Shown piece after piece: positions 1-64,000 of a DNA stretch of 64,000 bases. The DNA is from Thalia democratica. Lineage: Eukaryota. The stretch covers positions 17,422,001-17,486,000 of the forward strand of contig OZ241832.1 in assembly GCA_965202585.1 (NCBI GenBank), in the 5' to 3' direction. How positions within the stretch are numbered: position 1 is the first letter of the stretch; each line of letters begins with the position of its first letter. The notes beneath the pieces were generated by a model. The model ran no database searches and had not been told where the DNA came from. It saw only the letters and a list, made by a program, of their open reading frames with translations. The position numbers and the translations under genes were made by a program.

Positions 1-324
1 TTGAAAAAAAAAAAAAATGTTTACAGTAGCTTTAAACATGGCATATTAAAAAAAAATAAAATTGTAAAATTTCTATCCGGTCAGCAAAAAAAAAGTTTCA
101 TTTTAGTTACAATAGATTTTATTTTGACCTCACTTATATTTTACAAGATTTAAGCGCATAAAAAGTAAGCTTATCCAACATAAGAAGAGCTTAAAGTATT
201 ATCTGATATTACAACATCCCTAAAAATCGTCTTAACTTACTGCTTCTTCATGTTGGTACAACGACATCTGCGCTATATCGCCCACCAAGTTAATATTTCC
301 CACCCCGACATCATTGAAACCGAC

Positions 325-457
325 CACATGTCACTTTAATGACGTAACACTTAACTTAATACTTTGTATTATGACGTAACGCACGAGACGTATGCGGCGT
401 GTTTTCCCTCCAGTGTATTTGTCGTGAGAAATAATTTGAAGTTTGCCTGCCTCGCAG
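325..457. promoter_or_regulatory. Unit-start conserved module (CACATG, TGACGT(A/C)A CRE-like site, acga(g/a)acgtatgcggc, ending in ttgcag)
   Basis: Five copies: 325-457, 21998-22132, 42390-42541, 62705-62856, 63606-63760. Regulatory role is inferred from the motifs and conservation. Confidence 0.5.
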
Positions 458-2893
458 CACATCAGAGGTTTGTTGTTTAACCAAATAAAATGAACAAGAT
501 TATAGTCTCATATGTTATAAAACATGTTTCATTTTGAACGTTCTCATAAACTAATCATAAAAGTTTGATTTTGTACTCTTCAAAAATGTTAAATAATCAG
601 GTTCCAATAACGAAAACTTGAGCAATCAGGAAGAAAACTGTAGATGTATCTAAACTTTTTATGCCTTCTATGACCACTATGCTTAAACTCTTGAAATTTT
701 TATTAGTTTCTTTAGGGATAATACTGAGAATGTTAGACTGTTTTTAACTTAAATTTAGATAATGTAGTAATAAAATTGTACCTCGCAAAAACAAAATCTT
801 TTTGCTTTCTAATTACCCTTATCTTGTAGTAACTGTACCTTTGTGATGTCATAAAACAATGTTGTCGGTTTTCAGATGAAATAAAAACTTTGTAATCACC
901 GTTTTTTGCGGGGGTACTTGTTAAATGAACTTGTCAATATTTCAAAAACAGTCTTTTGAAACCTTATGAAATCAGTTCTATTTTCATTGAACTGTTTTTT
1001 TTACGAGATGGTTTGTAGCCAACAGTTTGTTTTAGTTCTTTGTAGGATTAATTAAAATAGCTAAGAAAAACCGATGCACTTTTTTACTTCGTTGTTTGAA
1101 GAACTATCAAGCTTAGCTTTTAACCTTGCTAAACACTTAAATTTCTAAAAATATTAAAGATTTGGCACAGGCCCATCGGTATAAAATATTGTTTGTTAGT
1201 TTGTAATAAGGGGTTAAAACAACTTGATATTGCATATATCTAAAAAAAAGCAGTTATTTAGACTAGTCGAGTATGGTTATAGTGTACTTGCCAGGAAGGT
1301 ACAGCAAGGTAAAACTTGTTTTGTTTAGCAGACGAAATAAAGAGAGTTTTTTTGTGTTTAGCAAACGTAAACACAACAATTTATATTTATTCTATGCTTA
1401 ACATGTGCTTATTTTAACAAAATTGGCCTATTAACAATCGATTTGGATTCAACTCACATATCATACAGAATCACAAAAGTCACCTGCAACTCAAGATTAT
1501 TTAAAATGAGATAATTCGGCGCTGACCTTTGAGAGAACTGAAAGAAAGTAGAAATCAGTGATGCGTGAAATATGAAGCGTGTTTGCGATCACCACCTTGT
1601 GGTAAAAGTTGAAGTTTGCAGAAGAAATTTGAACGTTTCAACAAATTAGTGTTGATGTTGCTTTGTTGGTGGCAGTTACAAATTATTTTGTTGGTTTAAA
1701 TTTGCTTAAACAACCTTTTACTTGTAGTTTTGTTTTAAAAGTTGTTATTTTCAATGCTTAAAATTTGTTATAAACTAATTGATATTTTTTGATAACTTTT
1801 TCAAACTAATTAGGTTTCATAAAATAAGACTTCGTTGTTTAGTGGCAGTGCAAAGTATATTGTTGTTTAGTTTTTATTTTTTAGAATACCTTTTCTTTTT
1901 AATTTTTATGTAGAATAACATTATACAAGTTGTTTTATTTTTACTTTAAAGTTCATTAAGTTTGTTTTTATAGTTTAAAATGCTTAAAATACGTAATCTA
2001 AATGTTTTTAAATGTGTAATCAAGTTTAGATTCTTAAGATTTAAAGTTAAACTCATAAAGACAAATGTTAACTTTTTATAGCGCAGTTATTGATTTTTAT
2101 GTTAAGTAGTAATAACAATACTATCGTAAAAATGGAATACAAACAATCTTAACTTACTATGTATTCTCAGTAGACATTTATTTGAACTTGATTAATGTGT
2201 TAATTTTATCTAAATACTGTCATGTTGACAGATACAAAATGATCATATAAAAGTTCCAAAAAACCATCTTACTAGTTCTTATAAAACAATCAAATAACTT
2301 TTTCAGTCTATGCTTCTAGTAGTTTTTTATCAAGTTGTTTTTGTTTGTACCTTATTTAGTGGATAATTAACGAGTTTTATCAACATTATATCTTGTTGAA
2401 GCCTGACAAAGTTAATTGTAAGCTAAATATTTGCTTTTACTTCGGTTAATAGTTTGTTTGTATTAATTTATAGTTGCAAAAAGCATATGTCGTGTTACTT
2501 AAACACTTAGCACAACTTTTTTAAATATCTTTCAACGTGGCCTTCAATTTTTTTGCAAAGTCAAAACTAATATGAAAAACTTTATTAAACTTCAGATAAG
2601 TTTTGACAGAAAACAGAAACTATTTGTTATACCGGACGCTGGTTTAAAATATATCAGAAATATGGATTAAACTGTCCAATTTATACTTTTTATCTAAATT
2701 AAACATCAGCCTAGCTGATCAGTATTATCAAGCACACAACAAGCTAATTGACATTCACTAATTATTAAAAGTTTTATACAACTTTCTTTTTTGTATTTTA
2801 TTACATTTCAATGTGTTTTCATGATATAAGTTTTCACAGTAAAGTCGAAAATAGCCGGGTTTGTAAAGAATTTGCATTGTGAGGCATATAAAA

Positions 2894-3018: not shown

Positions 3019-3418
3019 TTCAATTCTTTCCAAATTGCATGTTTTTATTTTTAGTGAGTTTATCACGTTGCAAAGCTCCTATGTAAATACAACTTCGCCT
3101 TGCTTCACTGATAATGTTTTGAAAAATATTAAAATCGAAACTGCTTCGTCAAAGAGTTTTATTTTACTATGTAAGCGTCATTTTAAAGCTATGTTAAGTT
3201 AGTATAATACTTTTATGGTTATAAAACAATTTTTTTATATTATTGTAACTAAACCAAAAAAATATTCGACTTCAAAGTAATCAAAAATAACTTTGATAGG
3301 CTTTTAAGCTTATTAACAAAAATATAACATAGTATTCGACTTACACTAATATAACATAAACAGATTTGTTAAACTACTAGATTACCAACAACTTAATACC
3401 AATGTTAACTACTTGTTC

Positions 3419-3573
3419 AAGTCAAAATACAAAAATCTACTTTAAAGAGGCGACTTAAGAAGTTGCAGTGTTTAGTGTAAACTCGGCAGGAGAGAAAAAT
3501 CCAGTTTACAAAACAATAACGCGGAAAATTATTCAAGCGTGAAACGAGCCCCCATATCAGGTTACCTGTTTTT
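3419..3573. promoter_or_regulatory. Conserved non-coding element C (units 1 and 3 only)
   Basis: 153/155 identical to 46557-46711 by eye. Only the left edge survives in unit 2 (~26082). Contains inverted TGTAAAC/GTTTACA forkhead-like sites. Confidence 0.55.
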
Positions 3574-6213
3574 TGTTTGAAAAAAACCACTTCAAAAAAA
3601 TTTCTTAAATTTTTTTTTGTTTCATGATCTTAAATTTTACTTAACTCTGTATATCTTTCTTAAACTTTTACAATGATTAAAAAATTAGTGTGATTATGCC
3701 TACAATAAATTCGAATTAAACGCTAAATTTTTAAGTGGCAAATTTATAGTTTCTTTATAACATGAAAGTTACTGCTGTGAAAAAGCACTTAAAAAACTCT
3801 CGAAAGAGGCTTTATTATTCTTTGTTGTCCAATGTGGCTTGTAAGAAACATGAAGTTTGATAATGAAAAATCCAATAACTTTTTTTACAGCCTGTAAAGA
3901 GTTTTTAATTTTCATTTCATATTTTGATTAATTTTGTTTGTGTTAGAATGTTTTCTTACTTAGACATAGTTTTTTAAGAATACTTTTTAAATGTAATATA
4001 ACGTATCTTATGCTTGCATCTAATAATTCTACTAAAAAGATACAACGCAGATTTAGTATTTTAAAAAAGCGTTGGTGCCTAAAAGAAAAACAATTATCTT
4101 GTCATGCGACATAACTTATTAGTAATAACGATTAAAACCGTAAATCTCCAAGTTGAAAGTTTTTTTTTTTGAAAACAAGCAACAGCGCGCCATTAAAGTC
4201 AGTTTGAATTTAAACAAAAGTTAATTTTCCAAACTTTCAAGCTTCATAATGCGATTATGACGTATAAGAACGAGCAATTGCTACAACGTCTGAAATAAAA
4301 ACGAATTTTATTCCGAACAATTGGTTTACTAGTTTAGTTGGTTTTTTGAAAAATATGTAATAATTAGTTTTCGGCTCGAGTTATATGTCGTTTATATTTG
4401 AAATATATTGAAACTAATATATATTTATGTTTGTATTTAGTTCGGCGCATTGTACAACAATCTATTAAACTGACTTAACTGTCGCTATTAATAGCTATTG
4501 CTTGATTTATTGACCACTGCAACATTTTATTAAACTGTTTAATTGAGGTTAAAACAGCTTATTTGCTTATCTTTTCTTTAGGAAATTTGTTTTGAATTGT
4601 AATATCTATAACAAAAATTAGTAAAATTAGGTTTAAAAGTAATGGCATTATAATATGCTACTTGGCCAAATAAACTATTATGATATTGACGTTGTATAAG
4701 TAGCTTTTCACTGAATGTTTATTTCTCTTATTTGCCTTGCAAATAAAGAAACCGCAGGTCTAAATGTCATTACTTGGCCAAAAAGAAGATTAATTATTAC
4801 ATAAAAATTGTCTTTGGCTTCAGAGTTGTTATTGAAACAAACTTTTTCTCAAGCAACGACTCATTATACAACTTCATTATTTTCAAAGTTTGTCTTTTTC
4901 GTTTTTAAAAATAATCCAAAGCACTAAGCATTAAAAAAACTTTATGTTTATTTATGTTTATAACGTAAAATTATAATAATTGAATGAAATAGAGCAGGTG
5001 TTACGATAAATTAAATTTTCATGCATGTAAACAATAAACAAATACGAAAAAAGGTTTTAGTTTTATTATAAGTTTATTTTGTGACATTATAAAGGTTAAT
5101 CCAAACTCTTCACATTTGTACTTAACATCTGAAGTAAGCAATTGTTAACCTTAGTAATTAGATTAGTGACTAATTAGTGCTGAATGTCTTATTTTATTGA
5201 TCTAAAACTGAACTACAAAGTTTACAGAGAAAATTTTTGAAGTAGATTTAAACTTTTTGTTTATGATAATTAGGTAGTTGGTATAAGCCTAATTTTTTTT
5301 TGTTTTTAAACTAGTTTGAAATAATGAGCTAAAAACGTTTTTTTGTGTTTGATGTATTTTTTAATCGAAGCTTAGACAAAATGCAAATACTATTTGTCCA
5401 ATTATCAACATTTAGAAATTATCTAAAATAAAGTATAAACATTTTTTAAGCTCAAGCATAATATTTTTATATATTCTCACCAATTTAACAATTGAAAAAA
5501 CCACAAAACAGTTTACAAATTGCCACACACACTGCAATGAGATACCAGGAGACAAACAGTGACTGATGATTGAATTCTTACGTGTTTCGAACCAACTTAA
5601 ATCCACAAAAAGGGGTTCACCTTTCCTTCTTAAAACCCTTCAATCGCCTAGATACGCTTCAATTGAATCGAAAAAACTTTCAAAACTCACCAGACTCGAC
5701 AGATAGCTCTTCTTAAAAAGCTAGCATCAAAAAAAAGAAAAAACTGATTAAGTTGGTACTAACATTTAATGGCTCTTTGTTTTGCTTAGAATCTTGTTTA
5801 CCTGAGTTTTAAGTTTGTGTAAATCTCAGGCACGTTTATCTACCTACTCGTGAAGTTTTTTAGTAAAACATTACATGTATAAAAAGGAAAATCAATACAA
5901 ACAATATTTTATTACACAACTAGTACGTACGTGACATTGAAAACAAGAAGTTCAAAATGTTTCGAGTTTAAAACGTTTTGCTTGATCGCTTACAGAAATT
6001 TCAGGATCGTTTTACATCTGACCGGCTTAAATTTTTGCAGTGAGTAATGTAGATACTTATACACGTGCCAATAAAAAATAACGCGGTCATGTTACAGCAT
6101 GTAACCATAACACTACAACTTAACACTTTATTGAAACATAATTGAGAGAATGCGTGTCTCTTCAAACACAAACAAAAGGTACATTCAAAATAATTAAACT
6201 TTTAACCTTTTTT

Positions 6214-6310
6214 ATTCCGATTACCACGCTACTCAGATCAACCAATTAACCTATATGCTCAGCTGTGTGTCTTTGATATCTCGCCCCAATATTTCCATAG
6301 CAACAACAAG
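6214..6310 (+). other. Putative first (5' UTR/uORF) exon of FLRT-like gene A
   Basis: 97-bp indel-free block in all three units ending in the consensus donor CAAG|GTAACT (GT at 6311). An E-box CACGTG lies ~150 bp upstream. Start is approximate. Confidence 0.5.
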
Positions 6311-7589
6311 GTAACTATGCAACTTCGACAGCTATGCACACTTTCAAATCAGCCATTTTGGTGTTAATTTTGCCGATAAACATGTTAGCATGTACACAAC
6401 TTCTACGAAGAATTTTTCTTGTTGAGGCTAATTAGCTCGTCTCGTTCGAAATTGGCGTGTTTAGTTAAGTTTTTGTGCCAAAATCAACAGTAGATAACGA
6501 CTCATTATAGAGCTTCAGTGTTTCAGTGTAATGAGCAGTCGAGGTGGTCTTTGGTAGCTAAAACAATAGTTTTTTAATCTCAATGAAATCTTAGAATGTT
6601 CATTTTGATGGAATCTTTTATAAGTGTTGTTGAAAGATGATTTTTAGCAGGAGTTTGTGTTTGTTTGTAATTGTTAGAAAAAAGTTGTTGTCATAAAAGT
6701 ATCTCGGTTTTACGACTTTTTTTATTGCCATCGGAAAGAATCGAATATAGTGAGTAGTTTAATAAAAGTTTAGTGTAACTAACTCGTCTTTAACTTTAAT
6801 TATATAAAAAATACTCTTTTCTTTAAATTGTGAGTCAGTTTAAAACAAGATTTTACAATGCAATTAAACTTAAAAAAAAATTATCAAAGTAAGAAATTAA
6901 TTGAAGCGTTCAAAAACTTTGACTCTTTTAAATTAAATCTACCGTGAACTGATTTGAAGCGCCGAAATAAGACGATTCGCCCAATTAGGGTAAAAAATTA
7001 TTCTTTACCAAGGATTGAATTTCTTTGAAGCTAGGCAACTGTAGCCAAAAATCTTTGAAAGATCTAATAAGCTGACTATTTATTTGTAACTGAATACTAA
7101 GAAGGTTTTTTTTATTCTGCAGATCGGTGTTTGTTTTAATGATTAAATTATGTTTTAACCGTTATCAACAATAGTCTGACAGTTGCAAGTTTTGATGAGT
7201 ATGTTTTGTTAAAGTTTCAGAATTTGTTTTTGCATAAAGTTTTAACAAAGGAAAAAGGTATTTATACATGTTGTAACACAGATAAAGGTTGTTTACAGAT
7301 ACTTTTGTTTTTAATGTTAAAAAGTTAACTGATTAAAAGTTTTATAAATATAAACCAAGTTAAAAAACAAAATTGCTTTAAAAAGCATTAATTATTACAA
7401 CAAACTATTAGCATCATAAATTTAGGTTCAGTAAGTTTAAAATTTGTAATTTTGCAAACTATTTAATGACCTTTTGTCGTAGAAATAAGTAAAAGTATTA
7501 TTTGACTTAAATTGAAACATGATAAAGGGTTTTACAAAACTTTCAAAATGTCACTGTTGTTTTGTTGTTTTTGTATTGCAGTTAAGGAA

Positions 7590-7710
7590 ATTTGTTAAAT
7601 CTCTTTATGAGAGAGTAACTATGTTTTGATACAAATAACAAGCGCATGTGTTGCAACAAACATTAAAACTTTGTTTTACATCTAACTTACATCAGAATTA
7701 CACGGTCAAT
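7590..7710. promoter_or_regulatory. Intron-1 conserved non-coding element
   Basis: tatgagagagtaa...gttttgatacaaataacaag...tgttgcaacaaacattaaaactttgtttta is conserved at ~30280 and ~49888. Confidence 0.45.
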
Positions 7711-10700
7711 TAAAAACTAATATCGATCAAAAATACACATTTAAATTACTTGTTATGAAATTAGCTCCTATCTTTGTGTTTTATTTAAACCACAATAACT
7801 ACATCTATATTAAAAAGTATAACAAAGTTTAAAAAACTTAAGTAAAACAATGATTAATTCTGAAAATCTTAAAAAGGATACTAAAAAAACTATACATAAA
7901 AAGCAATACAGTACATATATAAATTATTAAAATGTTACTCATCTAAAATTAAAAAGGATTTAGCAATTTAAAACTAAGATAAAGTATTTAATTAAACATG
8001 ACATAAATTAAACTAACAAATCAACTTTTTTACATAAGTTTTAACATTAATCGCAAATACTAGTCAATTTCTGACTTAACTGTTTCAAATATGTTATTTT
8101 AAGTATCAGTGTACAAGTTGTTGTTATTTCAAGCATCATTACAACTATAAAGTACACTGTTTTTATTTACGTCATATCGAAACCTGTTTTATTAAAGCTA
8201 TTTGTATTACTTTAACTTAAGTGACAAGCTAGACTTCAATAAAAACCTTTAAAAGTTTAAAAAAAACAACAAATAGCATTATTTCAATAAAAGTAGTTAT
8301 AAGTTATAATAAATATACAAAATAATTTTCAAGATTGAAGTGAATTTAAAAGATAAATTACTTACAAACTCCGTTTGTTTTCGTCAAAATAAATTAGATA
8401 TTAAATTGCCCTTCGATTTTCAAGACCCCTTTTAAAAATGCGGCCAAATAAAACCCCATCTGTCAACATTTGAACATTTCAGTGGTGATCACGTACTGTA
8501 AATAAGAAGCCATCATGTGTATAGAAGTTCATTCGTGCAGTGGTTGATGTAAACTTTGTATTCAGAAAAATAATAAATATCGAGCAGGTGTTTGTGTGTG
8601 AGAAAAATAATTGTATTTTTTGTATTAAGTTGTTGGTAGTCAGCTATGTCTCTCTGTTGGTTAATCTATTTTGTTGCTTAGATTATAATCAGAAATATCG
8701 AATCATGCTAGATCTATATGATAACAATATTATATTTATGTTATGTATTATTTTATATTATGTAAAACAAAAGAAATTTATTATTGCGTTTAACTACAGC
8801 TTTAGAAATAAGCATACTAAAACTAATAATTTGGTTTATTTCAATATAAGTACTTGTTATCAACAAAAATAAAGTGTTTTTTGATTAAGTTGTAAGGATT
8901 ATCTTATTTTGAATGTGTTCGTCTAAAGATTTTACATACTGATTGATACTTGTTTTGAAAGTTGCATTTTAATGTAAAATGATATTTATTGCTTTTTAAT
9001 TGATTTCCTGTAAGTTTGCTTAAAACTGTTATAAATCTTATTAAAATACAGTTTCGCTAAGACCAAAGAATTAATCAACTTTAAACCTTTTGACAGCTTA
9101 CATTTAAGATATTTCATTTTTTGTGCTTGACCTTAGACAAGCTTTAGACACTAAAAACTTAAAAAAAAAATGTTTTTTGTTTATCTTGTTTACAAAGCGT
9201 TTTAGCGCTTTCCGACAATTAGCTTGCTACTATTCACAAACGCTCAATTCTTTTATAGCCTATACTCGCCTTTTTATTATTCAGTCAAGTCACCTCAAGG
9301 CTTTTAAGCTTCACTGTGAAACGAGCTAGTCTAAAAGAATTTTCAGCAAGTAAAAATTGATTAATCTTAATTTTGACGGCAGGGCAGATCGGAAAAAACA
9401 AACAAAAACTCATGCTCATATTTATTTTTGTAGTTGGATTTACGACCTTTTGATACTTTTAATCTTGTGAAAATAAAGATTCTTTTGTTGCTGTTTTTCT
9501 TCTACGTGTTAACATCAGAATATTTTTGATAAAGTAAACAACCGACTAACTGTCTTTTGTAGTTTTTCAAATCATTGAAGTGTTTCAATAAAAATCTAAG
9601 TTATTTTAGATCCCAATGTCAACATTACACGTTAAGGAAAATTATTCAATTTAAAATAATATGTCTAGTAGATTATAGTTTAAAAATTATTATAAATCAA
9701 ACGTAGCGACAATATTTACTCATCTTTGTCTAACATAAATGGCCTTTATTGCAAGGTCTGACTTTTTGTGGCAACTACGTGACAACAATCAAATTAGGGT
9801 TTAGTATTTAAATAAAAATCATAAATAATTTAAAACTTATTTTTTTAATAAATTCAAGTTTTATTTGGTTATGTGCTTTTAAGTGAAAAAACTTAACTTG
9901 TTTATTTCCCAAGGTATAATCTGTTTTAGTCATGGAAAAGTTACTACAATTGCTTAAACTTATTTTTGGATTTTAGTTTTTAGTTATAAACTAAACCTTA
10001 TTTTAAGTCACATTAAGCTTTTTAATATTTTTAAGTTTTTAATTAAAATTAAGCTTTTGGAAAAACACACTAACTGTGTTTTTTTAAATTAAAAAAAAAA
10101 CTAAAAATGGTATGTTGAAGTTCAATTATTCAAACAACTAAGCATGAGTTAGATAAACTTTTTCTTACTTTTAAGTTTTTATGTAATTTTGTTTTTGTTA
10201 TTTAAAAAAAATTTTTAGTCGTGTTTAAACAGTGCGATAAGAAAATTGGCAAAAATATAGTAGCCAGAGAACTTGACCTCTGTGTGTTTTATGAGCTTAA
10301 TAAAAAATCAGCTTACTTTCTCACAAACTTGAAACTATCGAAAGTTAGTTTGTTATTTGTAAATTAGTTTACTCTCATTTAACTAACAAAGTCAAGTTTA
10401 ATGTTGCTTTCTTTCACTAACAACTTGATAACTAACAACTTTCACAATATCAATGTCAACCCAGTTCTGTCTTATTAAATCTACCCTTATCTTTTCACTT
10501 ACGCGCAAATTAATTTGCGTTTACATAAAAACGTTGCATGTAGCAGGTGCGTACTAATTTAGAATTTAATTTTAACACTGGCGGTTTTTTTACGAAAAAA
10601 ATTGCAACTTTGCATTTGAAATCCGAGCATTAGTTATTAGCACTTTTTATAAAGAGCTGACAGAGTAATTCGTGTTCTCACGTTATAAATTAAATTAACG

Positions 10701-11365
10701 CTGATTTAAAAGAAGTTTCTTTTTTAAAATCATTACATTTTTCAATAGCTGAAAGGCTCATGGGGTGTAAGACTTTCAACTATTTTTTCCTTTGAAGTTT
10801 TGCAAAAGTTCAGTTACGCGCCAAATTTAATGTAAACTTTCCTCGCGAAACAATTAAACCGAGGATTCGTAAATTCTTCAGATCGTTCTTGAAATTAAAA
10901 AAGGCTGTGCTCTGATAAGAAGAATGAAATAAATTATTTTGTATTATACGGTTTGAGGAAACTTTAGTTTTTTGTATTGATTTGCATGCTAGAAATAATA
11001 AGCTATGCTGAAAATATTATATTCTTTCTAATTTTATATAACATCTGTACTTTGAAGATAAAATAAATAAACTATTTTAAACTTCATTCGTCTGTAGAAA
11101 ATGTAAGCAAAACTGGTTAGCTGTTTTTAGATTATATACATCGTTTACTTAATTACTTATTAATAAAGAAAATTGATAAAATCAGTGCTTATCCTTTTAC
11201 GTTTAATAGCACATTTATGAAAGTTTTTTATATACAAACGTGACACAGTGTTAATTGGTTACAAGAGATGTGCGCAAATTTCTGTAAAAACTAAAACAAA
11301 TTTTGCATCAATGTTTAATTAGGCTTTGTTATCACAACTGTTTATCTCCCTTTATCGCCCGTAAG

Positions 11366-11411
11366 CACCTTGATTGTCATGACAACAGTTCACCTTGGTT
11401 GTCATGATAAA
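11366..11411. promoter_or_regulatory. Tandem pair of RFX X-box-like palindromes (25-bp direct repeat)
   Basis: caccttgattgtcatgacaacagtt followed by caccttggttgtcatgataa; the same pair occurs at 33553-33602 and 52952-52997. Confidence 0.5.
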
Positions 11412-11792
11412 AAAAACTGAAATGCACATCAAGCTTCCTACATGCATTGTTTGTATAGCTATCACCTGTTATCTATCGTTTGTTTGATTTAAAAAAATCA
11501 GGGTTGTCATTACCTCTTGTTATCAATGAGCACTTTGAGCTATTTTATCGGTTAAGCATTAATTGAAGTTATCTGTGATAATGTTTTTGTAAAAGAAACT
11601 AGATTATTATGAATTACTAATAAATACTTAACTGAAACAAAGCTTCTACGTCATAACATAAAAATAAAATAACTACTTATTAAAAACATTATAACTTAAT
11701 TAACTTTGTCACAAAAACACACAAAAATCTTTTTCAGAAAAAATATATACTTTTAAAACTTTTAATGATATTGGATCAAGAGTGAATGTATA

Positions 11793-15100: not shown

Positions 15101-15157
15101 AAAATCATAAACTGGCAGCATCCGTATAAACGTCCATATTTTGTTCAAACCCTTGTA
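15101..15157 (+). pseudogene. Intronic fragment homologous to the FN3-coding segment of the FLRT-like gene
   Basis: Translates KIINWQHPYKRPYFVQTLV versus KITWQHPYKPPAFVQTLV at ~12888-12941. Confidence 0.7.
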
Positions 15158-20100: not shown

Positions 20101-20159
20101 AAAAAATCGATGGTATTTTATTTGCTTTGTAATTATGTTCTAGTGTTTGGCTTATGAAT

Positions 20160-46556: not shown

Positions 46557-46711
46557 AAGTCAAAATACAAAAATCTACTTTAAAGAGGCGACTTAAGATG
46601 TTGCAGTGTTTAGTGTAAACTCGGCAGGAGAGAAAAATCCAGTTTACAAAACAATAACGCGGAAAATCATTCAAGCGTGAAACGAGCCCCCATATCAGGT
46701 TACCTGTTTTT
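46557..46711. promoter_or_regulatory. Conserved non-coding element C, unit 3 copy
   Basis: 153/155 identical to 3419-3573. Confidence 0.55.
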
Positions 46712-48486: not shown

Positions 48487-48583
48487 ATTCCGATTACCAC
48501 GCTAGTCAGATCAACCAATTAACCTATATGCTCAGCTGTGTGCCTTTGATATCTCACCCCAATATTTCCATAGCAACTACAAG
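48487..48583 (+). other. Putative first exon of FLRT-like gene C
   Basis: 97-bp homolog of 6214-6310 with donor CAAG|GTAACT. Confidence 0.5.
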
Positions 48584-51500: not shown

Positions 51501-52951
51501 TATTTGTTTATGTGCTTTTCAAGTAGATAAACATTGACTACATTCTAAAACAGGTACAAGTTCTATTTTTAAAGAATACGTTGTGAAATTTATATTAATC
51601 ACTTATAATGAGAAAATATTTTGTTTGTGAACCTTATTGGTTACTTTTAAACTTAACTTAATTTTATACCGGTTACAGTTAAGTTTCAAACGGAATGTTT
51701 TTAAAATATTTTTGCATAAACTAGCAAATAATAAAAATATTTAGTGTTTTTAAAAATTTATTCTTTTAAGCAGTAGTTGCTGAATGTTTTCATTTTACAA
51801 CTAAAGTTATAGAGTTGAAAAACCTGATTTCATTTAATGTTTTTTGTTGTTACTTTTAATGGTCTTTTTACATGGAAAAAAATAGTTGTTTCATCGTAAA
51901 AAATGCAACTAAAATGTTTGTATTAAAACTGCTGTAAAAAGCTTGAACTTTGTTTTACGAGCTTAATGTTCAAATCGTAAACTTTCACACACTTAAAACT
52001 ATCGAATAACAATTTAATATTTCAAAGTTACTATCAATTAGTATACAAAAGTCAAGTTTAATTTTAATTTGTAAGTTCTTCGCCTTACCTTTATTAGTGT
52101 CAATATAACTTCCTATTCTTCTTTATATAATCTTATTTAAGCTCGATTTAGTATTTTGAAAAAAATGAGGCTTATAATACAGGTGCATAAAAAATTAGTT
52201 GCAGAAATTTAATTCGCACATAACAAAAATTATTTGAAGTTGTTTTTTAAGTTTCATTGTTAGCAAATTCTATGTAGTCTTAAAATTTTTAATTATGTTC
52301 CCACAATAAAAACTAAGTTAACGTTGAGAAAACTTTGGATTTTAGAGTTGGAAGTAGAAAACTTTTAACTATTTTTTCCTTTGAAGTTTTCCGAAAAGTT
52401 CTTTTACGCGCCAAATTTAGTGTAAACTTTTCTTGCAAAGACAATTAAACTGAAGATTCTTCAGATCATTTTTCATAAAGGAATCATCATAATAAATCGT
52501 GCTGCTTTGTTAAGAGTGCAAAAATAGTTTTTCCAATTTTTACGATCAGAGTTTTTCTAACAACTAAACTTTTTATTGATGTATAAAAAAAAAATAATGT
52601 AAATAAAAACTTTTATTGTTTAATGATTCTTAAGATTAGTATAAGTTTACTTTTTAAATTGAAATACTGTAACTTTTGTCTGCTTTATTTATTTATAGTG
52701 TTTAAACAAAGAAAAGTATTTCTAAATTTTTTTACACTGCAAGTCAACACAAAATAAAAATCCTTAAACTAAATATTATTGTTTCACGTTTAATAGCTTA
52801 GTTATGAATTTTTTTATATGCAAACGTGACACTGTGTTTATTGGTTACAAGACCTGTGCACGAATTTCTGTGAAAAGGAAAACAAATTTTGCCTCAATGT
52901 TTAATTAGGCTTAGTTATTACAACTGTTTATCTCCCTTTATCGCCCATAAG

Positions 52952-52997
52952 CACCTTGGTTGCCATGACAACAGTTCACCTTGATTGTCATGACAAC
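52952..52997. promoter_or_regulatory. X-box-like tandem pair, unit 3
   Basis: GTTGCCATGACAAC (52959-52972) and ATTGTCATGACAAC (52984-52997). Confidence 0.55.
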
Positions 52998-53335
52998 GCA
53001 TAAAGGTTTTTTTTGTGCTGCTTGTACATCTAAAATATTTTATATAAAACTATGGCTTAATTGAAAAATTGACATGTCACGATGCCTTTTGTGATAATTT
53101 GTTAATTACACCATTATTTTACTTCTAAAAGTTCCATCGTACAAATGGCAAATAAAAATCTCGATGTAAATTGAAGCCTATTGAACCTTTGTACTAGTAA
53201 AATTAATTACCTTCTTAAGTTAAAAAAAAGTTATTAAACTTTTCAAATAAAGTTAAAACATTTTGTAACTTTTTTCAGTTAATATATATTTAATTAAAGC
53301 AAATAATTTTATAATATTGGATCAAGATATCAAAA

Positions 53336-55392
53336 ATGAAGAAACTGTTCATAATGTTCATGGTGATAACCACGACAATTATAACCGGTTGTCATTGTGA
53401 TAAAAAAGAAGTCTGTCGACAAAATCGTAATAAAATATTCTGTCAAGAAAGAGAACTGAAAGAGATTCCATCGAATGTATTAGGGCCCGAAGCAACTACT
53501 CTACTTCTCTATGGTAACCAGATTGAAAGTGACCAGCAACTAGACTTTCATCTGGGTATGTTCAAAAATCTTGAGACCCTTGATATGCATAACAACCACC
53601 TTAACAAAGTTCCCAAAGCCCCAAAAACTATCAAGAAGCTAGACCTTGATTCCAATAAAATCACCAGAGTTAGCAAGTATCTTGATCACCTGAGAGAACT
53701 GAAGGTATTATCTTTGAGGTCAAACCAACTGAATGACGCTTCTTTTGACTCAAAGACTTTCTCTGAAAACAATAAATTAGAGGAAATCAACTTAGATTAC
53801 AACCAGTTAGAATTCATACCTAAAAACCTGCCAAGAAGTTTAAAAAAGTTGACGCTGAAAAATAACTCTATACTCAGCATCCAACGTAATAGTTTGAATC
53901 ATTTAGTAAGTTTAAAGTTTCTAATGATTGAAGAGAACTATATAACTAACGAGAACATTGAAAAGAACTCATTTTCGCACTTAAACAATCTTATAGATTT
54001 AAACTTGCAAAATAACGAGCTGACAGACGTACCTTTGGGTCTTCCGTACACTCTTAAGAACTTATACTTGTCACACAACCAGATAGAGTACATCAACATT
54101 GAAGATGGACCTCACAGTGGTACCTTGTTTAAGTTTGAAGAACTAAAGTTTGTAGATCTAAGCTACAACAAACTGAAAAGTGTTCAACCTCGTTCATTAG
54201 ACAGCGTCAAAGCTGCAAGTTTCAAAGGTAACAAATGGGTTTGTGATTGTTGGTTGGATTATTTCAGATCATGGCTCGAAACTTCAATTAGTAACAAGGA
54301 TCTCACTTGCGAAGGTGGGCCACAGATTTTGTTTGGGAAGTCATTAAAAGAAGTTGGAGAACTTCGATGTCAGTCTAGATACAGGGCAAGAAATTTCATC
54401 AGTGCTTCTGTTAATTACAATTCAATCAAAATAACCTGGCAGCATCCATATAAACCACCTACCTTCGTACAAACTCTTGTATTATATGGTGAATGTGTCA
54501 ATTGTAACGAACGTACAATGTACCGGAATAACATAGCAGTAGAAGACATGACTTCGAGATACATGACCACTAATTTTACTTTAGTAGACAAAAAAGCAAA
54601 TAAACTGGCAACTGAACTGAAAAACTTAAAAAGTAATATGATGTATCACGTTTGTGTTTATGACAGTGAACAAAATATTGATGACGTCACTAACACCCAG
54701 TGTAGGTTGATCAAGACCAATCCAAAATCAGTAACTAGTTCCTATGTAGATCCTGTCTACTTGGCCCTGATAGTTTTATCCATTTTGTTACTACTGACAG
54801 TGCTTGCTACTGCTACTTACTGTTTGTTTTACCACCACCTAAGTGGACTTTCCAAGTTCAAACGCCATAAAACTGCATTTCCATTAAGCTCTGTCGATTT
54901 GGAACGTGAATTTCATTCTATGAACCATCAAAGCCTCCCTCGAGGATTCCAGGGACATCCTGAAGATTACCTGAATCAACAACTTCGACCTCAACCATCC
55001 ATACCTGTCACGACGACCCACAACAACCTTAGTCATCACAACAACCAACCTGATTACAACACCCAGTGGTCGAACCGAACCTACGCCGAGTGTGGGTCGT
55101 ACCACATGTCACAACAGCGACACCCAACGAGAGAACCCGCAATCAATCAGCTCATACCACCCATGTTTCAACCAAGAGACGATGATTGTTACCAGGACAA
55201 CCGAGACGCGGCTGTTGACGCAGCAAGTGAATTCCAGTCGTTGCTGCCTGGCAACAAGAACTCACCTGCGTACGAGTTTCCGCGGGTTCTGGTTAGAAAC
55301 TCCTCTAATATGAGTAACCTTTCGTCACTTGTAGATGAAGAAAATACAAGACTGTCATCACCTTTAGGGCCATACACCAACGGTTGCAGCAG
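53336..55392 (+). CDS. FLRT: FLRT-like LRR-FN3 transmembrane protein C, main coding exon
   Basis: Same architecture as gene A. Acceptor ttttttcag at 53278; donor AGCAG|GTTAGA at 55392/55393 aligns with the gene A donor. Confidence 0.88.
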
Positions 55393-58264
55393 GTTAGAGT
55401 TGTTTATTAATTTTATTCATTTCTAGTTCTACTTTAACCGTAAAATTTTCATTTTAATCTATAGGTAGTACTCAACTATATACAAACTTAATACTACTAG
55501 TGTGTACTTATTAATTGAATAGTAATTTGTCATATATTGCTGTTTTGTATAAAACCATACAATCATTTAGATTAAAATCATAGTCGTAGCTAAAACTGAA
55601 GTAAAACAGTCTTTCTTGGTATGTAATTCATGAATTTCTTTTTTTCTTAGCTCAAAGTAGTTTCAACCTCACATACAATTGATCAGAACGCGTCTCTTAA
55701 AGCCGCAAAAATGCGGACACTTGTTTGTAGCAACAATTAACATGATGCTGAGTTAAAAAACATTTTGCCGACCGATTATCATTATGACGTCATATAGATA
55801 AAAGGGGAAGTTGTGAGGATAATTTAGTTGAGGGTTCTCAAAATAATCCTAAACAATCAACCCTTTTCTTTATTTCGCTTACAAAAAGAGTTTGGTCTTT
55901 TGAGTTTAATTGTTGTTTCCACTTGTTGTACAAAAGAGGTTAAGTAGAAAAATGATTACAGAAGTTTAGCAGCTTTTTTCCATATTTTATTAAACACATG
56001 CATGCAAGTCATCTAAAATCAAGAACGAGATATTAAACAAATAAGTAAAGTCTAGTAATTGTAAATTAATATGTGCTTGTTGTCATTGAAAAGTTTTACT
56101 TATTTTTATAATACTTATAAAGCAGCGGCATTTCAGAGTTTACTATTTGTTCAATTAAATTGCCTTGTTGACAAAATTCAAAGCTTTAAGTTACTTCTTT
56201 GTGAATAATGTTATTTGCTTCTTAGGTATGTTTTAATCGAACTAATTTAGCTTTCCAGAAATCTTTTGTTGTTAAAAAATGCTTCATGGCTTTTTTAAAA
56301 CTTCATTTTACTTAATATCATCGTAAGCTCTGAACTTATTTTTTTAATTTGTTGCATGTAAACTTTCTAAATGTTGTTATACAAAATCATTAGCTTCTTT
56401 TCAAAGTAAACAAAAAACCTTTATAAAAGTTTTAGCATATTTTTAAAACAAAAATCAAATCTTTTTTTTTGTGCTAGGTAATAAAAGCTACTTTTTATGG
56501 TTTTAAAAATTTTTCCTCTCAGAATTTTTTTAAAGCTTTTGAAGTTTTTTTGAAATAGGTTTTTTAAAAGTTAGCAAAAGTTTCAAAAGTTTTAATGATT
56601 ATTCCCTACTCTTTTATATTTTAAGTAAATTAGCTTTGACTACTATATGCAGTAAGAAATTAATGAAACTATATGCTCTTTGTACTAAGCTTAAAACGAG
56701 TGTAAGGTACAAGATATATAAAAACAACTTAAAACTTTACCAAAATTACTAAATTTAAAAATTCACGAGCTAAAATAAGCAATCTTTGAATTCTTGTTTA
56801 AAATTTCTTCATTACACTCTGTATTTTAAAAGTAAAGGTGTTAAAATTTTTCTAAGATGACAAAATATAAAGTATAAATAGTTTCTTATCTATCAACAAT
56901 TGCAAAATGGCCCATTATCTAAATGGGCCATAATGTAAACTACAATTTAATGCTAACAAATTGGTCTTTTGTGCTCCACCTTCCCAAACTAGGGTCTTAA
57001 CAGTTTACTAATTTCAAGATATAGATCTGATTATCACCCCCAGCTTTTACACTGGAAGTTTCAGCAAATTGAAAGCGTAAGTATCAAATAAGCAAGTATT
57101 CTTAAGTTAAACGTTTTGACTTTTTTTTGTTTAGGCTACCAAGGGTTTTAATATTTTAAATTTGATTTTAAATCGTAAAATAATGGGCGTACAGATAAAT
57201 GAAAAAGATACACATTAGTGTTTAAATATATTGTGACCATAACCGTTATGTTGTGAATTCTACAACTGTAAACTTTACTGTTTTATTTATATTTGTTTAA
57301 CTTCTCTAGATTACAAGCAATTTTTGTTGATAAGTAAGGATTTATATTAAACTATTTAAAAATTAAACATTAAAAATTCAGTAGTGTACTTTTTAACTAT
57401 TATATTTAAAAGTTTTATGAAAAGATTCAAAATTTTTAACTAATGCAGTTTTCTTTTTATTTTAGAACGTTAGCATTTACTGATCGATTTATTTTTTTAT
57501 CGCCGATCTAATGACCTCTACTTTGCAACAATTGTGAGTCATAATAAGATGCTAAAATATTTTGTTTGTTTTCAACCTCATTACCAATTTCATGGTCAGT
57601 AACAACGAGATTTATATTTGATAAAAGTATGTCACATCGCATGAAACAAATTGATGAATTAATGCGTTCACTAGTTGTTAAAAAACATCCAAAAAAGCTT
57701 AAAAGTTCAAGCGTGGTTTGCTTGAAAATATATACATATATATAACCTGTCACGGTAAAAAGTTTAAATAGAATCATTTAATATATTCGATGCCAAAAAA
57801 CTTATCGAAAACGTTGAGTGATGGAGATGAAAGTAACTACAGTTACGTCATAATGTGTATTTATAAGAGAATTGGCACTTAAACATCTGTTTTGAGAGAC
57901 TTTTACACACTACATGACTGGAATTTTATCTAGTAACACTTTTACTTTATGCTACTCATAACAATTGAAATGACACACTCAAAATGTTTTTTTAAAACTT
58001 ATAAATAAGCCACATTTTTTACTTACTTTACTTAAAGTAACGATTTAAAAAAATTAATCGGTTAATTTATATTAAAACTAATAGAAGCAATTGAGTTTAT
58101 TCAAAAAATAAATGTATAATTGTATAAAAAAAAAACCAAAATTTACTAATTCAAAAAACACGATTACTTTAATATCTAATTTTATTTCAGTTTTTTTATC
58201 TTATTCGGATTTTGAAGTTATGTAACAAGTTGAATATCATTAATTGTAATTGATTTTTTTACAG

Positions 58265-58502
58265 TGACCAGAACGGACAAGACACAATGTCAACTAACTA
58301 CGAATCCAGTCCTTCACCTGTACACAAAGTTTCCATGACAACCCACAACAATGACGTAAGATCCGATGACGTAACAAGACCGTACGATCACCTGATACGT
58401 CATTCGTCATCAGTGACGTCACCGTCGTTTCTACGCAACAGTAGCGCATTGTCACGTGACAGCGAGTATCAGCAGGTAAACCAGGCAGGCATCAAGTGGT
58501 AA
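58265..58502 (+). CDS. FLRT: FLRT-like protein C, terminal coding exon; joined protein ~764 aa
   Basis: Acceptor ttttttacag|T; AG|T = Ser keeps the frame into DQNGQDTMSTNYESS...; homologous to 16872-17139. Confidence 0.8.
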
Positions 58503-61500
58503 GAAAGATGACGTCACTAGAAGATTACTATGTAACAACTAAGATGAACATACAATAGGTGAAGGTTGCTAAATCACTAGCGGTGTTTGTTAAAAGCTGC
58601 AGGTTGCTAGAAAATTTACGTTAGGGTGATTGTTATAAAAGTACATTATTAATTTTAATCTTTATAGTTAACTGTGAAATTAGTTTAAATGTAAAATTAA
58701 ACTACTCAACAACTTTGAGTTTTTCTTTAGTAAGTAAACTATTTTATACAATATAACAATTGGTAATTGAAAATATGAGTTTCATACAAATTTATAAAGT
58801 TTATAGTACTATTGTTGGTAAACTGTTTGTGTTGAAATACTGTATAATGATTTAACTTTTTGTTCTAATGTTTATATTTTAGTTTTTAAATTTTATTGAA
58901 AGAATTGAAAAGACACTTTTTATTCTATAAGTCTGATTTTCTTTAATATGCTAAATATATGAAAACCTATTTTTATAAAAAATAATTGAATGACTAGTTT
59001 TTTTTCCATATTCTTTCTTATGTGATCTTTTGTAATACAGGACACAAATGTGCTCTTATTTGTGTTATAAATCATTTTGTTGCTTTTCATTGCCACAATG
59101 TTTTATGTTTCATTATGCTACAATTTATTATCATGAAATCTACCTGACAATAACAAACAAACTAAACTGTTGTACTTACATTCTACATAAATGTCAGATT
59201 ATATATATTTTTTCCTTTTAGTTACCCTCAGTTGGCACTAGTAAAAACACTTTTATTGTACTAAATTTAACTTTAGCATTATTCTTGTGCCAACTTTTAT
59301 ACATTATAGTGTCTTTTTTGATGTCGATTCAAAATGAAATAAAAATGCTATGGATACATCACGCTTTTGTTTTATTTATAATAAACAGTTTTAAACTTTT
59401 TCTTCGATTTTAGTAGTTCTTATAACGAAGTTTAGAAATACAAAGTGAAATATAAATGTAATAGTTACTTTTGTTCAAACAGTCTTCAAATTAATATACA
59501 ACAAAACATTTTAAAGTACCTATACTAGAATACAAAATACAGCTTGTTTTAAATTTTTGATTTTAGTTATGTTTTCAGTTTACTTATTTGTTAAAGTAAA
59601 AACTATGTGAGTTTTTTTTTTTTTTCAAACCTATACTAATCTTTTATGTTAATCATCAGTTTTAGTTTTTTTACGTTAATTTAAAGTAAGAGATTATTTA
59701 CATACATGTGTATATATGTTTGTATGTAACTGTGGATCAGACGTATAGTTTGTTAAGTATGAAAGAAAATACACTTTATATTGAAAAAAGTGTTGCATAG
59801 TATTGAAACAACACTTATCCTTGCAATCTCCGAACTAAAAATATATTACTAAAAAGTTATGAGTAAAGTTTCAACTAACACTTTAAGGCTTGTAACTACT
59901 TATTTTTGTGTTTTCTTCTGCCAACAAACACTTCAGAATTTATTAAAACTTGTATATTTTTCTTTACTTTTTGTCTAGACTTTTCATACTTGTGATAAAA
60001 TTATTAGGAAATAGGTTATTTTAAATTACACTTGTAACCATTGAAAATTTCTTGTTTTTCACACGGGTTTTTTGTAAAGTCAGAAATTTCAGGGTCTTTT
60101 ATTTGCTTTTCATTTATGCTCTAGTGTTTATCTTATGAATAATAAAGTGTTAGTGGCAAGATAGAATATTTCTCCTATTTGTTTGTGGAAGTCTTACAAA
60201 ACAACAATCATTTCTATTGAAAGCTTAATTGAAACAAATAATCGAATTTTATGTCTTCAAAGGATAAACTTTAATAATACAAGTATTTTTATAAGTTTTT
60301 TTTTTGTGTTGTGTTGGGTGTTTTGATTGTTGAAAATAAAGTACTTTTTTAACAGTTATTAATTGAAACATGTGCCTTTTTTTGTGACAGAAAGCTGATT
60401 AAACACAATATTAAATGTTAACAAAAATTGTTTAGACATGTTCTGTTAAATTAATTTTTCGTTAAGTAAAACAATCTAATATGTTATACGCTTAGCATAA
60501 TCAAGTTATAATCATGTATCTAACTTTCACGTTAAGTTTTATTGATAACAATATATTTTAACTAAAAAAATTAATATTGAAGTTTTAAGGTGTTTTACTG
60601 ATTTAATTTAGTTCAAACATTTTCATATACACTGTATGTTTATTTCATGCGCGTTAAGGTAAAAATATTGTTTTGGATATCAGATAAAGTCATTGAAATT
60701 AAATCGGTTGTAGAAGTTAAGTTGTTGTTATCACATATACTCACTAAAACTCTACATTTTTTATAGTATTTGATAAGTTAAATGTTAATTCAAAGTTTAA
60801 AAAATATCCATATATTAATCTTTTTAAAACTTATTGCTATTAAATTATAATTTAATGCAATAAGTTTGGAGCTTTTATTATCTTGTTGTACAATTTAACA
60901 GCAACATAGTTGTTTTTAAAACAAGTCATTAACCATTATAACCAATAAAAATGCAGTCTACATTTAAAAATTAGTTTAATTGATATTTAAAAATCACAAC
61001 GTAGTAGTACTTTAGGATTTGCTTTTGTAAAACTAATTTTTTTTTAAAGTTGTAATTTTTTGCAGCAAAAAAGTAAAGTTATCACAAGCATTAATAGCAT
61101 CTTCTAACTTAACCCTAAATTTATAATTTAATGAGTAAATTCCTTGTAAAGTTTGTTAGCTTACTGAATAAACACTGCAAATATTTATGATACATAGATT
61201 TTAATATTGCGACAAAATATATTCCATATCATACAATGTTGATGTTTTTAATTTTATTGTTTTAAAATGAAAAATAAACTTGAATTAGTTGACAACAATT
61301 TTTTGCATAAACCTTATAATTTTGTGTTAATTTCATACTTATAAATGGCAATCTTCTTTTCTAGTAAGTTAGTATAGCAATTTCAGCTTTACCTAGTTTA
61401 TGTGCTATAAAAGCAGTAATAAAACAAAATTTTAACAAGAAAAGACTTATATGTTCTTAATTATATTATTCAGTCTAGGTAAAGCATTGAGTAAAACGTC

Positions 61501-62659
61501 GTTTTAATTGAATCGAATAATCTTCAGCAAATATAAAAGTCGAAAAAGCGTTAATAGGAGGTGTCATTTGCAAGTAACAAATTAAACGAGCATTTTAATT
61601 AGGTCAATGAAGGAATGTTCTCATAAAGCAGACCACACATATTTTTAAGATGCTTCTGTTCAAGTTAATTATTAACTAGGTCGTAGGGTTGCTTAACATG
61701 ACCAGATTGTTGTAAAACAATCAATTTGTTCAAGATATAAAACAAATATAGCTCGAAATAATGAAGAAAATCAGTTAACAATCAATATGTTATATTTTTA
61801 TTTTAGAATATAAATAAAAATTTTTACATACGCTGCAAATAAAAAATCTTGTCAAAAATGATGATTTCAAAGCCGAAATCTAACAAAGACAAATCTTAAT
61901 GAAATATCTTAATATAGCTAATTTAATGCTTTGTATAGTTTTTAAAACTATGTGTACGTTTCTGAAACATAAAAAACTACTTTTGTCTTAAAAATTGTAT
62001 AAAATCTTCTAAAATGAAGCATTAAACAGGATTTACATCGACATTTACAAACTTATTATAAAAAAAATGTTTTCCAACAGTTTTTTTACTACATTAACTA
62101 TCCTTAACCTTTAACATACTGTCCACAAGAATTTGTTATACCAACATTTAGTTTCTTTGTTATGCTTTTGATGATAAACAAGACATTAGACAATTGATGA
62201 TGATATAAAAAACAAAAGAAAATTAATATCAATTCGATTAACAGGGAGGGACGACAAGCATTGTTACGTCATAAAAACTGAAATATGCTTTAAACAAAGC
62301 ATGACTCTTTTCAAGTATTAAAACATACAACAAACATACTTCAAAGTATCAGCAAACCAATATTAAAGTTTATTTGTTTACATTTTAAAACATTGAGAAT
62401 TTTTGTAGGTATAAAAACTAAATACGTTAATTACGCCGTAAACTGAGACTAATATGCAAGCATAAGAACGAAATTAAAAACTTGAAGTATACAAACAAAA
62501 CTTTTAGTGACATCAGAAAGAAAGATACTTTTAGTCTTCTAATTAATCTGAAAAAAAAATTCAACAGTTTAATTCAGTAGATGAAAACCTTATAATATGA
62601 CTCAAAAAAAATACAAATTACATTTCAAAACCTTTTTAGCATATTACGAAAAACTACCG

Positions 62660-64000
62660 CAAAACAAAGTTAATATTTTCCATCTTGACATCGTTGATAT
62701 CAACCACATGTTGTTGTTGTGATACCACATGAAGCACTGTGTTTCATTATGACGTAACAAACAAGACGTATGCGGCGTGTTTATATACATGTATAATTTC
62801 TCCTTCTGTATATCGTGCTGCAACTTTCGCAAAAAATACATTTGCTTGCCTTGCAGCAGCCAAAAATTGATCTTAAAACAAGTAAAATATCGAAATGAAA
62901 TATCATACGTTACCACTTTTTGTAATAAATTTTGTTTTGATGTTTTAGTTAAATTAAAATCTTAGAAAAGGTAACTGCTAGAAAAAAAGAAAGTAGTACA
63001 AATTATTTTTTTAAGTTCTAAATCATTTTGAAAACTTTATTTGCATTGAATTAAGACAAAAGTAATTTCAAAAAACTGTTAAAAACTCTAGTATAGCCTG
63101 ATAAAGTAAAGATTAAAATATTTCTATAACTTGTAAAACATACTTGTTTTATGATTAGCTTTAAAAACTTAATCAAATTTTAATAAAACAATTTGAAAAA
63201 ACTCAAGTTTAAACTACCAAAAACTAAAATTTTTTGTAATAACAACTGTCAATCTTTGTAAAAACAAAGTCTTTGTGACATCATAAAGCAATATGAACGA
63301 TGCAATAAAAACTTTATAATCACCTTTTGCTATGTGGATATTTGTTAAACGAGTCTTTCAATGTTTTGGCAAACAATTTAGTTGTAAAATTTTTATAATA
63401 ATTTTCAATAACTAGTATAATTTTTAATAGTTTTTAAATTAATAAAATGCTTTATTTAATGACTCATTGCTACGTTTCTGTTAAAAGTAAACTTCTACAG
63501 AACAATCTGATTGTTTTTAGATATATAATTTATTCTCTACACCATATAAAATATATATAGTTGTTTTAAAATAAGGCAATCAACTACATATTTATACTGA
63601 AACGTCACATGAAGCAATATGTTTTATTATGACGTCACACACGAAACGTATGCGGCCACTATATCGCATGGCGAATGCGGCGGATATAGTATCTGTATAT
63701 TTTTTCCTTCTTAATGTTATGCTGCGTTTTTAGTGAGAAATACATTTGCTTGCCTTGCAGCAGCAAAAACTGATCTTAAAATGAGGAATATATCGAAATG
63801 AAATATTATTCGTTACCACTTTTTGTAATAAATTTTCGCTTTTGGTGTTTTAGTTGAAGCAAGACTTGAAAAAGTTAACCCCCAAAAAATGTGATTGAAT
63901 ATTTAAGAAAAAGAGTTCTAACTTATTTTGAAAACAGTCAAAGCCTTGATCTGCTATGAATAAAGTCGGTAACTGTTTGTTAATAACTGTAATGATGTCA
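62660..64000 (+). repeat. Two tandem partial copies (~0.9 kb period) of the unit-start module
   Basis: 62715-63270 is repeated at 63600-64000 (e.g. atacatttgcttgccttgcagcagc...cgttaccactttttgtaataaatttt); both are homologous to 280-960. Confidence 0.8.

Follow-up and report, generated by a model that had tools for sequence, protein, structure and literature searches.

Vertebrate FLRTs are three dispersed paralogues whose products guide neurons and vessels via Unc5, latrophilin and homophilic contacts, and to our knowledge little work on FLRTs has been done outside the vertebrates, whose sister group is the tunicates. Here we describe an array of FLRT-like genes in an AT-rich (GC ~26%), 64,000-nt stretch of the Thalia democratica genome (C8:17422001-17486000 in assembly numbering; hereafter the window, with all other coordinates counted from its first letter), in which two intact genes, g1 and g3, lie on either side of a pseudogene. 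Both encode type I membrane proteins of ~765-777 aa (777 aa for g1 and 764 aa for g3, from two coding exons each), which share with vertebrate FLRT1-3 a signal peptide, an LRRNT, ten leucine-rich repeats (LRRs), an LRRCT, one FN3-like domain and one transmembrane (TM) helix, at 28-30% identity, as well as the placement of nearly the whole coding sequence (CDS) in one large exon. Several features set them apart. The genes are in tandem where those of vertebrates are dispersed; the Ser/Thr/Pro-rich linker between LRRCT and FN3 of vertebrate FLRTs is missing, so that FN3 follows directly; the FN3 carries a cysteine-containing Y-G-x-C-x-N-C insert; and the cytoplasmic tail, roughly 100 aa in vertebrates, extends to ~280 aa, its last 79-89 residues being encoded on a second exon.

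The ascidian 'FLRT2-like' proteins (Clavelina lepadiformis XP_076818899.1, Phallusia mammillata CAB3246489.1 and Ciona XP_002127547) share the linker-less architecture and the FN3 insert and fall in the same clade as the window proteins (support from 84/97 to 100), at ~26-29% identity. By comparison with them, the window cluster is set off by a long branch (1.35-1.44 changes per site), its conserved tail is much longer, and some ascidian members keep the R..D pair at the positions of FLRT2 R186/D188, which the window proteins do not. The next-nearest LRRs are those of podocan, podocan-like 1 and ECM2 (class V SLRPs and relatives; 33% identity over ~36% of the protein), which are secreted, lack FN3 and TM, and align to the window proteins partially and in multiple stretches. 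As a genomic arrangement, the closest parallel is with birth-and-death tandem families subject to conversion, with which the array shares head-to-tail units, a pseudogene between live copies and a homogenised tract in otherwise diverged paralogues; compared with typical arrays of this kind its units are large (20-22 kb) and gene-poor. We read the locus as a fast-evolving tunicate FLRT branch that has been locally expanded to at least three or four live genes, and its changed binding residues and long conserved tail may reveal which FLRT functions are ancestral.

Self-BLAST of the window and a three-way MAFFT alignment resolve three colinear head-to-tail units, U1 to U3, and the beginning of a further unit (Table 1). 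The three units are identical at 0.67-0.69 of aligned columns, and the large coding exons of U1 and U3 are 81.8% identical over 2156 nt (E = 0); differences between units amount to 31-33% outside the genes and 18% in the CDS, and unit-specific insertions and deletions are present. This is a tandem segmental duplication array that has diverged beyond the allelic level. The window holds only two long open reading frames (ORFs), 11793-13862 (689 codons) and 53336-55426 (696 codons), one each in U1 and U3. Beyond the window, the array continues (C8:17484664-17540800) with five CDS-less partial units at ~62.7-70, 73.4-80.8, 81.5-91.6, 93.8-99.6 and 103.4-111.3 kb, which are copies of the upstream and intron parts of the unit, each with one or both of two conserved non-coding blocks, A and B, at 80-98% identity. 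A fourth intact FLRT-like gene, g4, follows ~50 kb downstream (~113.6-118.8 kb, ATG at 113565; 74% amino acid identity to g1). On the other side, an inverted partial unit spanning a unit junction lies at -16.9 to -9.2 kb and a direct fragment of a unit tail at -2.8 to -0.1 kb, immediately ahead of U1; rearrangement has affected the left end of the array. The original prediction had described a local tandem expansion of colinear units in which gene, introns and flanks were copied whole, with genes in the order intact, pseudogene, intact. The alignments confirm the layout and its coordinates, and the ORFs, splice models and U2 lesions confirm the order; its count of three members was too low, as the downstream partial units and g4 show. 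The array probably originated by repeated unequal crossover or segmental duplication of a 20-22 kb segment consisting of one FLRT-family gene with its intron and flanks.

The gene copy of U2 is an unprocessed (duplicative) pseudogene, because its intron and flanks are kept. Its largest lesion corresponds to g1 12526-13495 (residues ~245-568) and deletes the stretch from LRR9 to the first part of the tail, TM helix included; frameshifts and stops add to the damage, and the core of the upstream block A is also deleted in this unit.

The models of the live genes draw on two intron-less transcript contigs of ~2.6 kb from Joint Genome Institute (JGI) environmental samples, L001 and L002, whose products P0001 and P0002 have 765 and 785 aa. 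Positions 1-2093 of L001 align to 11738-13830 at 94.6% and the alignment then jumps to 16868-17389; splice signals are read at the two edges of this gap (CAG/GTAAGA at 13858/13859 and TTGCAG/C at 16871/16872), and g1 is therefore modelled with two coding exons. In g3 the stop codon comes three codons before that of g1 and the transcripts (KW-stop against KWYER-stop, 58494-58502). The 5' end of L001 falls exactly on the conserved acceptor 55-57 nt upstream of the ATG (11730-11740 and 53270-53280 in the window) and that of L002 within ~2 nt of the same acceptor, which suggests that transcripts receive a spliced leader in trans or that alternative 5' exons lie upstream and interrupt the contig assemblies. 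In sequence, L001 combines two genes: mostly g1-like, it resembles g3 over the final ~50 codons of exon 1 and throughout exon 2 (92% to g3 exon 2; L001:1900-2612 compared with window positions 13700-13830, 55250-55392 and 58262-58523), and it is a natural conversion mosaic from a related population or species. It counts against the gene models that these contigs stem from related environmental material rather than from this animal, and that none matches g3 specifically. A scan of metagenomes with the N-terminal 300 aa returned two distant LRR contigs only.

Among g1, g3 and g4, dN/dS is 0.16-0.19 at a dS of 0.66-0.92, and g1 and g3 (dN/dS ~0.16) are under purifying selection. Within the large exon, divergence is not uniform. 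The difference at 4-fold sites is 0.17-0.26 within residues ~201-420, compared with 0.34-0.48 elsewhere; codons for the same amino acid are identical there at 0.86-0.95 among g1, g3 and g4, compared with 0.48-0.65 to the outside transcript L002; and region-wise trees give a long common branch in this segment only. The central exon segment of the live copies, g4 included, has thus undergone homogenisation by gene conversion. The birth-and-death history proposed for the locus thus stands in its pattern of live, dead and live copies and fails in its pure form, since the central exon shows conversion among the live copies. We also considered dating the expansion to after the branching of the L002 lineage and dropped this, as the region trees do not resolve the relations of g1, g3, g4 and L002 outside the tract.

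We consider it very probable that the locus is a tandem array produced by duplication of a 20-22 kb segment, that its genes are of the FLRT family and are live, dead and live in turn, that their large exon has been homogenised in part by conversion, and that they are embedded in a near-neutral background interspersed with locus-specific blocks. The array is ordinary in kind but well preserved, a case in which genes were duplicated locally, died and were corrected from copy to copy. One 20-kb landscape is present side by side in live, dead and gene-less versions, a natural test of which non-coding blocks matter, and this makes the array useful as a comparative and regulatory test case.

Differences in the alignable background (0.31-0.33 per site) are close to those at 4-fold sites outside the conversion tract, and the bulk of the similarity between units is therefore what would be expected from whole-segment duplication followed by near-neutral decay. 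Against this background, ~9 discrete blocks of 100-340 bp stand out in the three-unit alignment at 75-95% identity (Table 1). Genome-wide searches covered blocks A, B, C, D and I2: blocks A and B gave eight matches each, all at this locus or on the unplaced contig C267 (described below), block C has three copies only, and block D has five, all at this locus. Being confined to the locus and C267, the searched blocks are therefore not transposable elements. A structured RNA was considered for block A and dropped, as its core folds no better than shuffled sequence (z = 0.47) and has no Rfam match; Rfam gave no match anywhere in the window at gathering thresholds, nor in 44.5-53.3 kb at E <= 0.1. 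An exact 28-nt scan of metagenomes for the core of block A found nothing, and no transcript joining block A to the coding exon was found there.

Across all blocks (1715 columns), unit-specific changes number 128 in U1, 152 in U2 and 120 in U3 (p = 0.12), and the distal blocks are kept equally well around the dead gene, in the CDS-less units and around the live genes. Closer to the gene, U2 has accumulated more changes than its neighbours: 108, compared with 57 in U1 and 73 in U3, in the 5' part of the CDS; 31, compared with 7 and 18, in exon 2; and 33, compared with 12 and 16, in the proximal block C. Constraint on U2 is thus relaxed at the gene and at block C and not in the distal blocks, a hint that the U2 gene is not what the distal blocks serve; conversion would also be compatible with this pattern.

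How the blocks came to be conserved is where our reading meets its strongest competitor, namely that they have no function of their own and are short conversion tracts or slower-decaying remnants, comparable to the converted tract in the coding exon. Conversion instead of selection could account for their conservation, gene conversion is demonstrably at work in the array, L001 is itself a g1/g3 mosaic, and most of the similarity between units, with a background so close to 4-fold divergence, needs no selection. We nevertheless think this explanation rather unlikely for the blocks themselves. Their identity is 75-95% across the three units and likewise in copies without a CDS as far as 60 kb away; five of six copies of block B share one starting position; conservation of the block A core (95%) exceeds that of synonymous sites within the conversion tract (83%); and 7-9% of block columns have changed per unit lineage, compared with 13-16% of background columns. 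The conserved blocks would then be cis-regulatory modules or 5' exons serving the live neighbours. A bolder version of this idea is that the distal blocks truly regulate, as modules or as alternative promoters and 5' exons, and that they are selected even at the dead gene and in the five gene-less units because they act on the surviving FLRT-like genes; what looks like debris of duplication would then be a regulatory landscape that has been amplified and is shared. The donor-like CAG/GT end of block A and the transcript breaks at the acceptor 55 nt upstream of the ATG would fit alternative first exons that lead into the coding exons; as a whole we hold this version to be speculative and doubtful. 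The original prediction that an entire regulatory landscape had been duplicated is thus right as regards the copying of whole units and goes too far as regards their content, most of whose non-coding similarity is near-neutral: only ~9 blocks are clearly conserved, and their regulatory role is conjectural.

The assignment of these proteins to FLRT was made with the exon 1 product as query, with P0001 as a full-length proxy, exon 2 having been translated only. Pfam recognises LRR_8, LRR_4 and LRR_1 with a weak LRRNT match. In a phmmer search of the PDB, the top seven matches are all FLRT2/3 LRR domains (E 9e-33 to 3e-31, residues 26-351 against 6-333), the next family being osteomodulin at E 1e-21, and the top five clusters in the ESM Atlas are FLRT1/2/3. 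Exhaustive HMMER searches recover proteins 600-730 aa long whose alignments run unbroken through LRR, FN3 and TM, the named ones among them being the Clavelina and Phallusia 'FLRT2-like' proteins, a Ciona protein, and FLRT-like proteins of lamprey, hagfish and bird; the nearest other family is podocan and podocan-like 1. The AlphaFold 2 (AF2) model of residues 1-500 (predicted local distance difference test score, pLDDT, 88) contains ten LRRs, part of a horseshoe that superposes on the LRR domains of FLRT2/3, followed by a seven-strand sandwich (356-461) and a TM helix (474-499). With its ectodomain as Foldseek query, the top ten matches are FLRT2/3 LRR structures (TM-score 0.87-0.89, root-mean-square deviation 2.1-3.3 A), with LRRTM2, NGL, LINGO-1, the Nogo receptor and decorin/biglycan at least four orders of magnitude weaker. 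Residues 348-472 modelled alone (pLDDT 88.5) again form a seven-strand sandwich, and the PDB structures closest to it are FnIII domains (E 6e-5 to 2e-3). Tunicate and vertebrate FLRT sequences all carry a Y-x-[IV]-C...C motif in the FN3, without variation.

The trees give this grouping moderate support. In a quick tree of 52 rows, vertebrate FLRT1-3 (100) have as their sister group a clade of tunicate type (28 rows, 100), in which the window cluster lies, the two being joined with a Shimodaira-Hasegawa-like approximate likelihood ratio test (SH-aLRT) support of 88 and podocan/ECM2 lying outside. A more careful tree of 33 rows separates podocan/ECM2 from FLRT and tunicates by a 100/99 split and places the window cluster in the tunicate clade (100/100). 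In the literature, Ciona sequences have been treated as FLRT relatives and used to root FLRT trees (PMC3560075), and FLRT2/3 are among the genes listed as arising at the tunicate-vertebrate base (PMC11203038). A word-based protein search had ranked podocan and ECM2 first; as the family of the window proteins they were rejected on the strength of the exhaustive search, the PDB ranking and the trees.

Several points weigh against a close equation with FLRT. Pfam does not detect fn3, so that the FN3 is supported at the fold level only, with modest Foldseek E-values. In the careful tree, the long-branch CPN2 outgroup joins the vertebrate FLRTs weakly (75/68), so that support for the tunicate clade and FLRT1-3 as strict sisters is moderate rather than firm. 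LRRN and LINGO were compared through the PDB and Foldseek rankings only and are left out of the tree. Three residues known for their roles in FLRT2, H170, R186 and D188, the last of which we take to be part of the concave homophilic/latrophilin binding site, are replaced by Q158, T174 and K176 in g1. The H170 position is Q157 in g3; it is variable throughout the tunicate sequences, and lampreys carry N or Q there. In mouse FLRT2, the substitution H170N abolishes Unc5 binding (PMC4838878); FLRT2 R186 has served as an engineered glycosylation site, and the concave face is needed for homophilic and latrophilin binding (PMC4396693). We still expect the window protein to act as a cell-surface adhesion or recognition molecule through its concave LRR face. 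It may bind other partners than vertebrate FLRTs do, since the residues on which Unc5, homophilic and latrophilin binding depend in FLRT2 are replaced, and the role of latrophilin/Unc5 ligand originally suggested finds no backing at the residue level. The tail is conserved among g1, g3 and P0001-P0003, strongly so in its C-terminal segment.

These same features could be taken to mean that the proteins are not FLRT orthologues and belong to an independent tunicate LRR-FN3-TM family, related to SLRPs and podocan or to ELFN/LRFN, that does no more than resemble FLRT. Such a family would accommodate the first rank of podocan and ECM2 in the word-based search, the lack of conservation of functional FLRT residues, the long tail, the missing linker and a node uniting FLRT with tunicates that reaches only 88 (SH-aLRT) in the quick tree and that CPN2 disturbs in the careful one. 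We judge it improbable: FLRTs rank first in the exhaustive HMMER, PDB phmmer, Foldseek and Atlas comparisons, with end-to-end alignments; the FN3 motif is shared without exception; the split from podocan/ECM2 is near maximal; and the two literature placements above point the same way. Based on sequence, predicted fold and trees, then, the tunicate clade groups with vertebrate FLRT1-3 with moderate support, and the FLRT-like identity originally proposed is upheld in a broad sense.

That the three units are instead an assembly artefact, in which haplotypes or repeats were wrongly placed in tandem, has a negligible chance of being true: haplotig-like redundancy does exist in this assembly, in that positions 1-30000 of the unplaced 69-kb contig C267 are colinear with the g4 region and 89-97% identical to it, but the differences between units, their private insertions and deletions and the decay of one gene are far above allelic divergence, and with units 18-33% apart the tandem layout is therefore no product of duplicated assembly. 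The gene copy on C267 has a dS of 0.10 to g4, and the contig represents a haplotig that has diverged or else a duplicate of very recent origin.

Table 1. Units, genes, conversion tract, pseudogene relics and conserved blocks, in window coordinates
Feature	Position	Strand	Details and counterparts	Evidence
Unit 1 (U1)	284-21997	+	21.7 kb, intact gene g1	self-BLAST, MAFFT
Unit 2 (U2)	21998-42389	+	20.4 kb, pseudogene	self-BLAST, MAFFT
Unit 3 (U3)	42390-62663	+	20.3 kb, intact gene g3	self-BLAST, MAFFT
Unit 4 start	62664-64000	+	CDS-less partial unit running past window end	284-404 matches 62664-782
g1 large exon	11738-13858	+	5' untranslated region (UTR) 11738-11792 after acceptor TTTTTCAG; CDS 11793-13858 (688 codons + 2 nt); donor CAG/GTAAGA	ORF, L001 alignment, splice sites
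g1 intron	13859-16871	+	3013 nt, phase 2, contains blocks I1 and I2	L001 jump, GT..AG ends
g1 last exon	16872-17389	+	CDS 16872-17139 (88 codons + stop); 3'UTR at least to 17389	translation; L001 2103-2612 against 16868-17389
g1 conversion tract	12393-13052	+	residues ~201-420 (LRR8-10, LRRCT, FN3); g3 counterpart 53933-54592	4-fold sites, codon identity, region trees
U2 large-exon relic	33954-35075	+	963-bp deletion, at least 10 small indels, 14 in-frame stops	alignment to g1
U2 exon 2 relic	37843-38114	+	many stops	alignment, translation
g3 large exon	53279-55392	+	5'UTR from acceptor TTTTTTCAG; CDS 53336-55392 (685 codons + 2 nt); donor CAG/GTTAGA	ORF, splice sites
g3 exon 2 CDS	58265-58502	+	78 codons + stop	splice sites, translation
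Block E	44819-45080	+	U1 1532-1696, U2 24545-24797	unit alignment
Block A core	46524-46739	+	U1 3416-3615, deleted in U2; ends CAG/GTTACC; candidate distal promoter and 5' exon, or enhancer	95% U1 against U3
Block A2	46825-46957	+	U1 ~3670-3805, U2 26201-26350	112 of 132 columns invariant in three units
Block B	48357-48700	+	U1 6166-6347, U2 28765-29107	83-90% identical
Block F	49094-49350	+	U1 6894-7101, U2 29567-29782	unit alignment
Block G	49815-50010	+	U1 7533-7720, U2 30207-30405	unit alignment
Block C (proximal)	52768-52996	+	280-510 nt upstream of exon acceptor; U1 11189-11410, U2 33369-33597	88% U1 against U3, 77% to U2
Block I1 (intronic)	57488-57600	+	U1 16071-16121, U2 37076-37181	unit alignment
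Block I2 (intronic)	57772-57959	+	U1 16330-16495, U2 37383-37549	unit alignment
Block D, near unit end	62105-62295	+	U1 21429-21601, U2 41770-41957	86-89% identical

The window contains no further gene, transposable-element ORF of at least 150 aa or sizeable tandem repeat. A 50-bp tandem repeat of 2.1 copies lies at 40861-40966, inside a U2-specific insertion.

In two other tunicate assemblies, no tandem copies were found within 10 kb of FLRT-like genes. On a 225,124-bp contig of a presumably tunicate assembly (ENA ERZ21736675, ctg13410l), the FLRT-like proteins P0102, P0245 and P0398 are each recorded and are probably linked; P0102, the one of the three that was placed on the contig, has no FLRT-like neighbour within 10 kb. 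Elsewhere in the genome of the window, at least nine further loci have LRR domains 31-39% identical to g1 (C8:40591412, C8:20341148, C8:20456818, C5:19537146, C5:62605383, C5:62685888, C7:37767146, C4:39387845, C792 and C1097), mostly split near residue 262, with some forming linked pairs; tunicate FLRT-like genes make up a sizeable family in this genome. Several loci with olfactomedin (OLF) domains are also present, at C4:53668585, C7:17464563, C5:53062963, C2:50329940 and C1:88540679, among others.

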